Sequence record: PQ898602.1
Direction: 5' to 3' (one strand)
Length of the DNA: 64,000 bases
A model generated the notes under the pieces. The model saw nothing but the letters and a program-made list of their open reading frames with translations, made no database searches and was not told the DNA's origin. Numbering within the stretch: the stretch's first letter is position 1; the number at the start of each line of letters is the position of its first letter. The position numbers and the translations under genes are program-made. Below, piece by piece: positions 1 to 30,450 of the stretch.

Positions 1-324
1 ATGAAGTTCTTCTTTGCACTTCTCGCTACAATGTTTTTCGCCCTTCCTGCATGGGCAGTCGATGTTCAAATGGGTTATGACATGAACCTAGCATTTGAAC
101 CTTCGGAGATCACCATCAATGCTGGAGATACAGTTCATTTCATCAACAACATGTTGCCACCACACAACGTGATTGTTGAAGACCATCCCGAACTTGACCA
201 CGAAGCACTCGCAATGCTACCTGGTGAAGAGTTCGATATCACCTTCACAGAAGCTGGTGATTATACATACTGGTGTGGCCCACATAAGGGTGCTGGTATG
301 ATCGGAACTATTCATGTCCAATGA
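1..324 (+). CDS. petE: Plastocyanin (auxiliary photosynthesis gene)
   Basis: Signal peptide, PHNV motif and C-terminal YWCGPHKGAGM copper ligands (His, Cys, His, Met). Confidence 0.95.
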   Translation: MKFFFALLATMFFALPAWAVDVQMGYDMNLAFEPSEITINAGDTVHFINNMLPPHNVIVEDHPELDHEALAMLPGEEFDITFTEAGDYTYWCGPHKGAGMIGTIHVQ

Positions 325-564: not shown

Positions 565-593
565 TTGACTATATATTATATGTGGTCTATAAT
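565..593 (+). promoter_or_regulatory. Sigma70-type promoter
   Basis: TTGACT (565-570), 17-nt spacer, TATAAT (588-593); predicted start near 600. Confidence 0.85.
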
Positions 594-601
594 AGACCTG
601 T

Positions 602-835
602 CGTTCATCCTCATGTTAGCACTTCTGCTGGCATTCACCCTTGCCCATCATAATGACGCCAATCCTTACGATTGGCATATGTCCTGTGAAAGGTGGTTAC
701 AGAGATCTACGGAAATCCGATTGGATCCTAACCTTGACCTAAGGTCGAAGTTGAGTCTAATCGCTTACCTTAAATCAAAAGTACCAGGTGAATGTAACGG
801 AGCGTATACATAGGACGCAAGTAAGTCGCGGAACG
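602..835 (+). ncRNA. Glutamine-riboswitch-like aptamer, copy 1, with an ORF inside the P2 loop
   Basis: CGTTCATCCT (602-611) and AGGACGCAAGTAAGTCGCGGAACG (812-835); P1 CGTTC/GAACG, P2 TCCT/AGGA; resembles the glnA/Downstream-peptide core. Confidence 0.65.
613..813 (+). CDS. Small two-Cys protein nested in aptamer 1 (66 aa)
   Basis: ATG at 613 is in frame with track ORF 565-813; the upstream TTG start lies inside the promoter; hydrophobic N-terminus; paralog of 849-1016. Confidence 0.7.
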   Translation: MLALLLAFTLAHHNDANPYDWHMSCERWLQRSTEIRLDPNLDLRSKLSLIAYLKSKVPGECNGAYT

Positions 836-838
836 GAG

Positions 839-1076
839 CGTTCATCCCATGTTAGAACTACTTTTCTATTCTAGTATGGCATGTGCTGATGCAGATGCTC
901 TAATGTTTAGAATCAAGGCACAAAAACATCTTGAACCTAAAATTCAAGTTGAACTAGTGGAGACCATTAAGGACTCTGTGCCAGAATGTAGGTACTACTG
1001 GGACGCAAACGACTGAAGGAACGGGGAAACGGATCCAGCGAAAGCTGAGAAGGTTCAATTTCACCAACTTCAGGAG
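839..1076 (+). ncRNA. Glutamine-riboswitch-like aptamer, copy 2 (Downstream-peptide/Gln-II-like), with nested ORF and pairing to the downstream RBS region
   Basis: CGTTCATCCCA (839-849) and TGGGACGCAAACGACTGAAGGAACG (999-1023); CTGAAG (1013-1018) is complementary to CTTCAG (1068-1073), which overlaps AGGAG (1072-1076). Confidence 0.7.
849..1016 (+). CDS. Small two-Cys protein nested in aptamer 2 (55 aa)
   Basis: Hand translation MLELLFYSSMACADADALMFRIKAQKHLEPKIQVELVETIKDSVPECRYYWDAND; below the track length cutoff; aligns with 613-813. Confidence 0.7.
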   Translation: MLELLFYSSMACADADALMFRIKAQKHLEPKIQVELVETIKDSVPECRYYWDAND

Positions 1077-1084
1077 TAAGACAA

Positions 1085-1249
1085 ATGAACACACTCAATC
1101 TAATCAAGAAGCAAATCGAGAAGGCATCTGCACTTCACGATGCACAGATCGCTAACACTGCATATCGTGGTGTTAAGTATGATTGCAAGCAAGGCGCTGA
1201 GGAAATCCATGGCACCTTCTGCTATCGTGGTCGCACCTACGTTAAGTGA
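1085..1249 (+). CDS. DUF4278-like small protein (54 aa)
   Basis: AGGAG RBS; two YRG motifs (TAYRGVKY, FCYRGRTY). Confidence 0.8.
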   Translation: MNTLNLIKKQIEKASALHDAQIANTAYRGVKYDCKQGAEEIHGTFCYRGRTYVK

Positions 1250-1353: not shown

Positions 1354-1518
1354 ATGCTGAAGATCAGAATTGAATATGATCTTCCAGAATACGATCCAGA
1401 TAAACACGATCCAGATGAAACTTTTGCGTTTTTAACGTATCGTGGTGTGAATTACGCCAAGTGGGTTAATCTTAAGTCACGAGGTAATCCATTCTGGAAA
1501 ATATTTAAGAGAGGGTAA
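1354..1518 (+). CDS. Second DUF4278-like small protein (54 aa)
   Basis: Contains LTYRGVNY. Confidence 0.65.
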   Translation: MLKIRIEYDLPEYDPDKHDPDETFAFLTYRGVNYAKWVNLKSRGNPFWKIFKRG

Positions 1519-1536
1519 ACAACCCTCTCTTTTTTT
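1507..1536 (+). terminator. Intrinsic terminator
   Basis: AGAGAGGGT/ACCCTCTCT stem followed by a T-run. Confidence 0.8.
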
Positions 1537-29632: not shown

Positions 29633-29780
29633 ATTATCCAAAGATGTAGATTATCCCAGTGATAAACTGGGTAAGTACATTTGGAATCTAGAAGAAAGTA
29701 ATAATCATGTTACTGGATTTTGTGATTCCATTGGAGAATGTTTTGAAGAAATCATCAGACATGGGAGTGTGGCGGAATAG
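29613..29780 (+). CDS. Small hypothetical protein (55 aa) overlapping tRNA-Leu
   Basis: Hand translation MMKIQIELSKDVDYPSD...; stop codon lies within the first 18 nt of the tRNA. Confidence 0.45.
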   Translation: MMKIQIELSKDVDYPSDKLGKYIWNLEESNNHVTGFCDSIGECFEEIIRHGSVAE

Positions 29781-29847
29781 GTAGACGCACCAGACTTAAA
29801 ATCTGTTGGGCATTATGCCCGTGAGAGTTCAAGTCTCTCTACTCCTA
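29763..29847 (+). tRNA. tRNA-Leu(TAA)
   Basis: Acceptor GGGAGTG/TACTCCT, anticodon loop CTTAAAA, long variable arm GGGC-ATTAT-GCCC, T-loop GTTCAAG; CCA not encoded. Confidence 0.95.
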
Positions 29848-30377: not shown

Positions 30378-30450
30378 GCCAATTTAGCTCAGCTGGTAGA
30401 GCAGGGCTTTTGTAAAGCTCAGGTCGTCGGTTCAAGTCCGTCAATTGGCT
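30378..30450 (+). tRNA. tRNA-Thr(TGT)
   Basis: Acceptor GCCAATT/AATTGGC, D-arm AGCTCAGCTGGTAGAGC, anticodon TGT, T-loop GTTCAAG; CCA not encoded. Confidence 0.95.

Follow-up and report, generated by a model that had tools for sequence, protein, structure and literature searches.

The window analyzed here is a stretch of 64,000 nucleotides (nt) that forms the start of Synechococcus phage S-SCSM2R (PQ898602.1), a cyanomyovirus of 244 kb. Close to its beginning, two small open reading frames (ORFs), ORF1 and ORF2, each encoding a microprotein with two cysteines, lie within what appear to be the hairpin loops of two tandem glutamine-riboswitch aptamers, aptamer A (602-836) and aptamer B (839-1024). 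Our reading of this locus, to which we give a probability of roughly 55%, is that homologous microprotein genes serve as the loops of both aptamers, that they were copied once, and that folding of the aptamers and translation of the genes exclude each other. Relatives of window region 540-1100 are found in 371 phage records, all of them cyanophages.

Aptamer arms around two small genes

Each unit is bounded by a 5' arm and a 3' arm, with the ORF between them (Table 1). The 5' arm occurs in the window only at 602 and 839, both strands having been searched. In the glutamine-II riboswitch of Prochlorococcus RS01 one finds, in order, CGUUCAUCC, a loop, GGACGCA, and then GGAACGG (PMC6698751); the arms of both window units agree with it in order and spelling, and their 5' arm is identical to the 5' end of the RS01 aptamer. 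The strands conserved in the class, CGUUCA-YCC, GGA-CGCAA/CGGAA, and GGAACG, are present in this order in both units.

In related IMG/VR contigs, both scaffolds are present but hold ordinary short hairpins instead of ORFs. In canonical copies, as in many related phages, this variable hairpin is 4-30 nt long. When the short-loop alleles were compared with the Rfam models RF01739 and RF01704, that of locus L103 (B arms) reached 37.2 bits with RF01739, above the gathering score of 35, and the others scored 22.8-33.8 bits (30-34 for other alleles with B arms), with expect values (E) of 6e-4 to 0.6 (0.006-0.6 for those with aptamer A arms). As short-loop alleles with the same scaffolds match Rfam, the ORFs would seem to stand where two tandem glutamine aptamers normally have their variable hairpin loop. 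Across 50 short alleles, this hairpin shows double changes in five of its six pairs and a covariation of 0.280 versus 0.089 in shuffles (0 of 500 as high), and 96.5% of its cells are paired, compared with 34.7-65.6% if the partner strand is slid. The outer helix, CGUUC/GAACG, is invariant and, therefore, holds no covariation information for or against. Judged by sequence, the arms are halves of glutamine-riboswitch aptamers, that is, putative glutamine sensors.

Some alleles spell their arms differently. The short-loop aptamer A of loci L157/L160 and L041 has the arms CGTTCAACC ... GGTCGCAA, in which the first hairpin pair is swapped from U-A to A-U. The arms of L069, CGTTCACCC ... GGGGCGCA (C-G), are spelled as in the crystallized glutamine-II construct; an apparent 499-nt loop in L069 was rejected as an artefact of a variant arm.

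The earlier note, which was made from the letters of the window, had tied the expression of the small proteins to the aptamer, and had named homologs occurring mostly without the arms as the finding that would speak against it. Among viral contigs, however, canonical arms are present at 218 of the 220 untruncated homologs (ORF1 95/95, ORF2 123/125), and the two exceptions, both ORF2 homologs, are flanked by variant arms, which in one case show a compensatory replacement of U-A by C-G. When 185,579 species genomes were scanned with the arms, only four true copies came up, all on contigs of metagenome-assembled genomes (MAGs) with the phage tandem context, along with three chance matches. The tandem-aptamer locus of the phages is carried by L263 (JBJBBP010000001.1, "MAG: Synechococcus sp.," a contig of 193,981 bp), L264, L265, and L267, filed under Synechococcus, Verrucomicrobiales, Euryarchaeota, and an uncultured bacterium; these look like cyanophage DNA binned into cellular MAGs.

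Coding and RNA constraints on the loops

An ORF inside an RNA domain raises the question of whether it is a gene at all. One could suppose that both ORFs are untranslated, and that the inserts enlarge the aptamer hairpin as structured RNA, their frames being open by chance. The region does fold better than shuffles (z = -3.76), and long-range helices within it covary. Yet none of the distinct versions retrieved by protein similarity, 60 of unit A and 93 of unit B (153 together), has a disrupted ORF. The ATG lies 1-3 nt after the arm; the stop codon overlaps the first G of the 3' arm in A, where in the window this G is also the G of the TAG, and lies 16 nt inside the arm in B, so that the last five codons of ORF2 (WDAND) and its TGA are encoded by the arm. 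Lengths of 53, 54, 55, and 56 amino acids (aa) are found for unit-B ORFs, that is, differences of whole codons. Summed column entropy per codon position runs third, first, second in descending order (first/second/third: 28.8/22.4/54.2 for ORF1 and 48.0/21.7/63.7 for ORF2), and the median ratio of nonsynonymous to synonymous substitution rates (dN/dS) is 0.17 for ORF1 and 0.30 for ORF2, well below 1.

To avoid ascertainment by protein, IMG/VR was also scanned with the arms alone. The ORF was present in 111 of 111 distinct long unit-B copies obtained in this manner, and in 109 of them it was the same ORF with exactly two Cys; one of the other two holds an intact two-Cys ORF that stops at the arm boundary, and in the other the ATG follows the arm at a distance of 8 nt. 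More than 250 distinct copies, 111 of them found independently of protein, all retain an open frame of 53-75 codons, and the frameshifts and stops that would indicate relaxed coding constraint were looked for and found in none of the distinct copies. The invariant cysteines, and the confident helical AlphaFold2 (AF2) models obtained from the alignments, point in the same direction. Coding selection on both ORFs is supported by these comparisons of sequences, and we find it hard to believe that the loops are untranslated RNA. The UGA/UAA toggle in the aptamer B 3' arm was also considered as a coding signature and rejected, the same G/A variation being seen in short-loop alleles.

The ends of the ORFs are also strands of RNA helices. 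The loop-closing helix of aptamer A has a predicted energy of -13.1 kcal/mol (RNAduplex), and the closing pair of unit A in ORF-bearing copies is C-G in 72, U-A in 26, and A-U in 1, with one wobble. A column-wise covariation scan of this helix was uninformative because of register shifts between lineages; in its place, the duplex energy of cognate start and end segments was compared with that of non-cognate segments. The cognate segments pair better in A (-15.7 vs. -11.7 kcal/mol) and in B (-12.35 vs. -11.2 kcal/mol), and for neither unit did any of 2000 permutations do as well. Further inside the loop of A, RNAalifold applied to 29 sequences gives an inner long-range helix, in which columns 37/191 are C-G in 16, G-C in 7, and U-A in 1; this covarying pair links a Phe/Leu codon to a Glu/Gln codon. 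Taken together, the covarying helices and the coding signal suggest that the loops are under both coding and RNA-structure constraint. The claim that the loops are under coding selection and are not neutral spacers consequently stands, but coding alone does not account for the constraint, since covariation also joins the first and last codons in an RNA helix.

Two microprotein families and their probable common origin

Both proteins belong to phage families of unknown function. ORF1 matches phrog_6471 at E 1e-30 over profile positions 1-66 of 66, and ORF2 matches phrog_504 at E 1.5e-23 over positions 1-53 of 53. In protein databases the ORF2 family comprises 1800 clusters and the ORF1 family 141; the named members of both are all phage proteins, and the rest are unnamed and mostly metagenomic. 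Sequence searches of Pfam, NCBIfam, and PDB with ORF1 and ORF2 gave no match, and neither PF14105 nor a YRG motif was found in them; a Foldseek search of PDB and a search of the ESM Atlas gave no informative relative. The GenBank coding sequence SSCSM2R_3 (ORF1) begins at 580 and extends through the promoter-proximal leader and the 5' arm. It is probably 11 codons too long, because the conserved start is 613: the PHROG profile fits 1-66 from this position, and the ATG of relatives lies 1-3 nt past the arm.

The AF2 model of ORF1 has a mean predicted local distance difference test (pLDDT) score of 79.1, with core blocks at 88-97 and helices at residues 2-12, 25-36, and 43-54, and that of ORF2 has a mean of 80.5 with helices at 12-24 and 30-43. 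Both share the topology Cys, helix, turn, helix, Cys, that is, a two-helix hairpin with a Cys at each end, in keeping with the helical family that the earlier note had envisaged. The cysteines are invariant within each family (C25/C61 in ORF1, C12/C47 in ORF2), and a disulfide or metal clamp formed by the pair would be a guess. A Sec signal peptide would have a basic n-region, a hydrophobic core of about 10-15 residues, and a cleavage site; the N-terminal hydrophobic run of the microproteins, about 10 residues long, has, by eye, no preceding basic residue, Glu3 is nearly invariant in ORF2, and RNA pairing constrains the N-terminal codons as well. Export and a disulfide bond, both suggested in the earlier note, thus find no support here. 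Our best guess at the role of the microproteins is that of small redox- or metal-clamped helical hairpins acting on host nitrogen control. The disulfide-stapled mini-protein Z34C (PDB 1ZDC), also a two-helix hairpin with a Cys near each end, was the top Foldseek row for the ORF1 model, at a non-significant E of 4.7; it is a structural analogy only, and has no sequence relation to ORF1.

The two ORFs had been aligned with each other and called paralogs in the earlier note. Their positions and the alignment proved correct, the latter residue by residue: both start with ML and a hydrophobic run, and they share M-x-C, I13, L19, L27, K32, VP, and EC, with one gap before EC. On its own this likeness is weakly significant, with a pairwise Smith-Waterman score of 35 versus 21.1 +/- 4.2 in shuffles, 52 of 5000 of which reach 35 (p ~0.01). 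It might then be argued that the peptides came to resemble each other by convergence, under shared RNA constraints (a start after UCC, the closing helix, and an end at GGACGCAA), instead of by common protein ancestry. The covariation of the first and last codons as RNA helices favors this to some extent, and part of the likeness of the N- and C-termini (ML..., ...EC) may therefore be a shared RNA constraint; the E/Q-C codons of ORF1 pair with its F/L codons, and the WDAND tail of ORF2 is dictated by the arm.

The family profiles speak for ancestry. Comparison of the ORF1 and ORF2 families by hhalign, at three alignment depths, gave a probability of 87-91% and P of 1.3e-6 to 6.5e-6, and recovered the same alignment over 39 columns, pairing ORF1 residues 23-62 with ORF2 residues 10-48. 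This is the interior of the proteins, with the first Cys and both helices, and it lies outside the closing helix. The score of 30.7 compares with 10.0 +/- 2.3 in 100 column-shuffled controls, the highest of which was 17.1, and cross-family searches with hidden Markov models gave p of 3e-6 to 5e-5 per comparison. Divergent nested ORFs with two Cys in the same layout were found at both aptamer positions (loci L018, 75 aa; L106, 56 aa; L141, 64 aa; L263, 60 aa; and L291, 53 aa), so that two cysteines at matching positions are common to at least five nested subfamilies whose nucleotide sequences differ greatly; the AF2 models of ORF1 and ORF2, as described earlier, have the same topology. We regard convergence as improbable, and the evidence supports the view that the two families are distant homologs within one superfamily of nested two-Cys microproteins. 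The relation must be a distant one, as PHROGs keeps the families apart and neither ORF matches the profile of the other's family at E <= 1 in a PHROG search.

How the two genes came to lie side by side is less clear. For a tree of 19 nested ORFs, the arm-encoded C-terminus was removed from the unit-B proteins. Unit-A and unit-B ORFs fall on opposite sides of one branch (ultrafast bootstrap 95, Shimodaira-Hasegawa-like approximate likelihood ratio test 100, and 96% of bootstrap trees), which fits one ancient copying event with no later exchange between the positions. Because ORF type tracks aptamer position on the tree, a single duplication of the whole aptamer-plus-gene unit, as originally proposed, is plausible. 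It falls short of proof, as short and long loops occur in all four combinations. If AL and BL stand for aptamers A and B with an ORF in the loop, and Ac and Bc for the two with a compact short loop, the loci ascertained by an ORF comprise 86 AL+BL, 33 Ac+BL, and 9 AL+Bc, and those ascertained by a short B loop 50 Ac+Bc and 22 AL+Bc. The 3' tails of the scaffolds are specific to the position, GTAAGTCGC in A and ACGACTRAA in B, and identical in short and ORF-bearing forms. The original proposal has in its favor a well-supported split between A and B ORFs, but the copying of a loop into a pre-existing neighboring aptamer explains the data as well as a whole-unit duplication, with subsequent losses, would do. 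Either the ORF-bearing or the short loop could be ancestral.

Alternatively, the tandem aptamers could have been there first and received their ORFs separately, by insertion or gene conversion of a microgene cassette into each hairpin loop. In related phages, tandems of two short-loop aptamers (Ac+Bc) are frequent, at 50 of 80 loci, tandem glnA RNAs have been described from cells (PMC2864571), and either loop can be short or long; because the tails are the same in short and ORF forms, the scaffolds look older than, or independent of, their loop content. The region also accepts mobile DNA. In Synechococcus phage Sf-CH5 (PV340852.1; locus L268), a homing-endonuclease gene with a GIY-YIG-like N-terminus (CDS 888-1460) occupies 848-1470, exactly between the A 3' arm and the B 5' arm, the insertion beginning after CGTT of the would-be B arm. 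On the other side of the balance, A and B ORFs form two groups, with no exchange among the 19 representatives, the cassette codes for no mobility function, and both ORFs start 1-3 nt after UCC with an AUGUUAG opening, as expected if a unit or a loop had been copied. Separate entry is in our opinion unlikely, although it deserves to be taken seriously. A single copying event would have occurred long ago, either of the aptamer with its gene or of the loop into the neighboring aptamer, leaving ORF type to follow position strictly, and later phage recombination would have exchanged ORF-bearing and short loops at either position.

A gene within a putative sensor: setting, proposed mechanism and meaning

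The nested genes appear to share a transcription unit with further small genes. Table 1 collects the features; small ORFs and thyX follow downstream of the tandem-aptamer region.

Table 1. Coordinates of the tandem-aptamer locus and its neighbors in the window
Feature	Position	Strand	Remarks
petE	1-324		Upstream of the tandem aptamers
Sigma-70-type promoter-like site (TTGACT, 17 nt, TATAAT)	565..593	+	11/12 consensus matches; ends 8 nt 5' of the first arm
Aptamer A 5' arm CGTTCATCC	602..610	+	CGUUC, outer-helix strand; UCC, hairpin-closing strand
Loop-closing helix of aptamer A, 5' strand (UCCU, then AUGU)	608..616	+	Includes ORF1 start codon; pairs with 808-815
ORF1, 66-aa two-Cys microprotein (phrog_6471), in the putative aptamer A hairpin loop	613..813	+	ATG 613, TAG 811-813
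Inner long-range helix, 5' strand GCAUUCACC (codons A-F-T)	631..639	+	Partner 787-795
Inner long-range helix, 3' strand GGUGAAUGU (codons G-E-C)	787..795	+	Partner 631-639
Loop-closing helix of aptamer A, 3' strand (ACAU, then AGGA)	808..815	+	Overlaps ORF1 stop codon
Aptamer A 3' arm GGACGCAA-GTAAGTCGC-GGAACGG	813..836	+	These 24 nt also close short-loop aptamers of related phages
Aptamer B 5' arm CGTTCATCC	839..847	+	Second copy of the arm
ORF2, 55-aa two-Cys microprotein (phrog_504), in the putative aptamer B hairpin loop	849..1016	+	ATG 849, TGA 1014-1016
Aptamer B 3' arm GGACGCAA-ACGACTGAA-GGAACGG	1001..1024	+	
ORF3, 54-aa YRG-repeat protein (phrog_545, DUF4278/IF17-like)	1085..1249	+	PF14105 E 0.0034 for the window copy
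Intrinsic-terminator-like hairpin with T run	1507..1531	+	

The promoter-like site, which is also found 5' of the arm in syn9, Sf-CH5, and IMG/VR loci, would place the transcript start 1-2 nt before the aptamer A 5' arm, and the hairpin at 1507-1531 is likely to mark the end of the unit. Both window aptamers stand in the leader position 5' of a DUF4278/IF17-like gene, ORF3, whose family matches PF14105 at E <= 0.01 in 29 of 33 members (best 3.4e-5). DUF4278 genes are typically preceded by glutamine aptamers, and in the cyanobacterial DUF4278/IF17-like class under glutamine riboswitches, glutamine turns translation on (PMC6212724); ORF3 is presumably the gene that the tandem aptamers would canonically control. 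A second small protein with YRG motifs is encoded in the same unit at 1354-1518 (phrog_6192), and both it and the phrog_545 protein are weak DUF4278 matches, so that the phage carries IF17-like candidates; a hydrophobic ORF of 34 aa (1246-1350) lies between the two genes. CUGAAG in the aptamer B 3' arm (1013-1018) is complementary to CUUCAG (1068-1073), which overlaps the first two bases of the ORF3 Shine-Dalgarno sequence AGGAG (1072-1076), and this pairing is used in the minimum-free-energy fold of 996-1090 (-22.3 kcal/mol, z = -3.1). AUGAAC of ORF3 (1085-1090) is likewise complementary to GUUCAU of the aptamer 5' arms. Either pairing could constitute the expression platform. Elsewhere in the window there are two transfer RNA genes, at 29763-29847 and 30378-30450 (Rfam RF00005, 53.8 and 64 bits).

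Closure of the hairpin, which the glutamine pocket needs, would bury the AUG of the nested gene, and a ribosome on that gene would in turn hold the aptamer open and, in B, also read through the 3' arm. With the start codon in the closing helix and ORF2 read through the 3' arm, ribosomes and the folded aptamer should, therefore, exclude each other. Transcription of the 5' strand 150-200 nt ahead of its partner would give a co-transcriptional interval for initiation, and the microproteins might be made only before the 3' arm is transcribed, or at low glutamine. Once translation has terminated the helix could close, and the closed aptamers would report glutamine to the IF17-like gene downstream.

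Several observations weigh against the reading of nested genes in working glutamine aptamers, and should be kept in mind. The closing helix is stable alone, at -13 to -16 kcal/mol, and may form with or without glutamine; for this reason, the weakest step of the proposed mechanism is that repression of the nested genes would depend on glutamine. An Rfam search of the window gave no glutamine-riboswitch match at the gathering threshold or at E <= 10, which we attribute to the hairpin loops being genes of 150-200 nt. A covariance model built here, R1, cannot span the ORF and recovers no more than the 3' half of each window aptamer, at 801-838 (21.6 bits, E 6e-6) and 963-1026 (13.5 bits, E 0.001). 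Most short-loop alleles, too, fall short of the gathering score. The phage aptamers are minimal variants without the third stem that both Rfam models have (P3 of the three-way junction in glutamine-I, and P2, flanking the pseudoknot strand, in glutamine-II): only 9 nt separate CGCAA from GGAACGG, and in the Rfam alignments 6-8 nt stand in for the 13-15-nt segment of the model. The ORF tree contains four long branches of uncertain placement. Finally, marine metatranscriptome contigs from four runs extend over the locus from about 549/620 to 1499 and leave 400-531 and 1500-1631 uncovered, which fits the predicted transcription unit but is soft evidence only, as the coverage is contig-based and may include DNA. 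Joints in these contigs (848 to 999) were considered as RNA processing and rejected, being short-loop alleles of co-occurring phages.

A further point of this kind concerns the fold itself. The A 3' arm can form a local hairpin with the B 5' arm, and a circularly permuted local aptamer of this type, serving as a downstream-peptide leader for ORF2, was rejected as the main fold because, at both positions, the short-loop alleles are in canonical order, and because covariation of the closing pair spans the ORF. It is possible that the hairpin is a competing fold. In locus L082 (IMG/VR contig 3300024062_000955, ~1175-1200), the A 3' arm reads GCAACGG and the B 5' arm CCGTTGATTCC, with a mismatch in each in-unit outer helix; this double change keeps the local hairpin and breaks both in-unit helices, which hints that the competing fold may be functional.

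The reading of nested genes in tandem glutamine aptamers is best placed by comparison with known systems. Glutamine riboswitches have already been reported in T4-like cyanophages and other marine phages (PMC9602691, PMC9964418, PMC9004378), and small proteins of marine picocyanobacteria are tied to the glutamine aptamer, with tandem glnA RNAs (PMC2864571). The phage units resemble these riboswitches (RF01739, glutamine-I; RF01704, glutamine-II) in the strands CGUUCAUCC, GGACGCAA, and GGAACGG, the outer helix, and the variable hairpin, and they share with cyanobacterial glutamine riboswitches upstream of gifB/IF17-like DUF4278 genes the tandem arrangement and the class of downstream gene. They differ in that the hairpin loop is a complete, conserved gene of 150-200 nt, in that the third stem is absent, and in that the coding frame of B runs 16 nt into the 3' arm. 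As in riboswitch "downstream peptides" (yfr6-type, DUF4278), small picocyanobacterial or phage proteins are linked to a glutamine aptamer; unlike these, the nested proteins are without DUF4278 or YRG and lie within the aptamer, not after it, the true downstream peptide being ORF3.

Two more distant parallels are instructive. Homing-endonuclease genes sit in the loops of group I introns of T4-like phages, where, as here, an RNA fold is closed by helices across an inserted ORF, alleles with and without the ORF coexist, and the setting is a T4-like phage. In our case there is no intron, the nested gene encodes a two-Cys microprotein of 53-75 aa and no endonuclease, the RNA is a putative metabolite sensor, not a ribozyme, and no mobility is evident. 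In attenuators with leader peptides or upstream ORFs, the choice between RNA folds depends on the translation of a short ORF; the phage ORFs are likewise short, lie in a 5' leader, and overlap strands of regulatory helices, so that ribosome occupancy and RNA folding should compete. The difference is that purifying selection seems to act on the phage peptide itself, which has invariant Cys and a predicted fold, and that the ORF lies in the ligand-binding domain and not in the expression platform. A search of the literature found no report of genes or ORFs inside riboswitch aptamer loops, a result that is limited to the library searched and is not proof of novelty. On present sequence evidence, a gene inside the aptamer loop would be a new arrangement within a known class of riboswitch.

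We put forward more tentatively that the ligand-binding domain of a riboswitch here contains a translated gene, that one glutamine signal may give opposite outputs (the microprotein from the open form, the IF17-like protein from the closed form), and that the loops may be exchangeable cassettes in wild cyanophages. Riboswitch aptamers are treated, also by search tools, as compact non-coding domains; in these phages the loops would be genes. If true, this is a new regulatory layout, in which a gene lies inside a sensor and translation and ligand sensing compete for one RNA. The natural short-loop alleles provide ready-made experimental controls. Phages with nested genes are abundant in the ocean, and two large, unannotated phage microprotein families tied to nitrogen status would offer a starting point for studying their function during infection of Synechococcus and Prochlorococcus.

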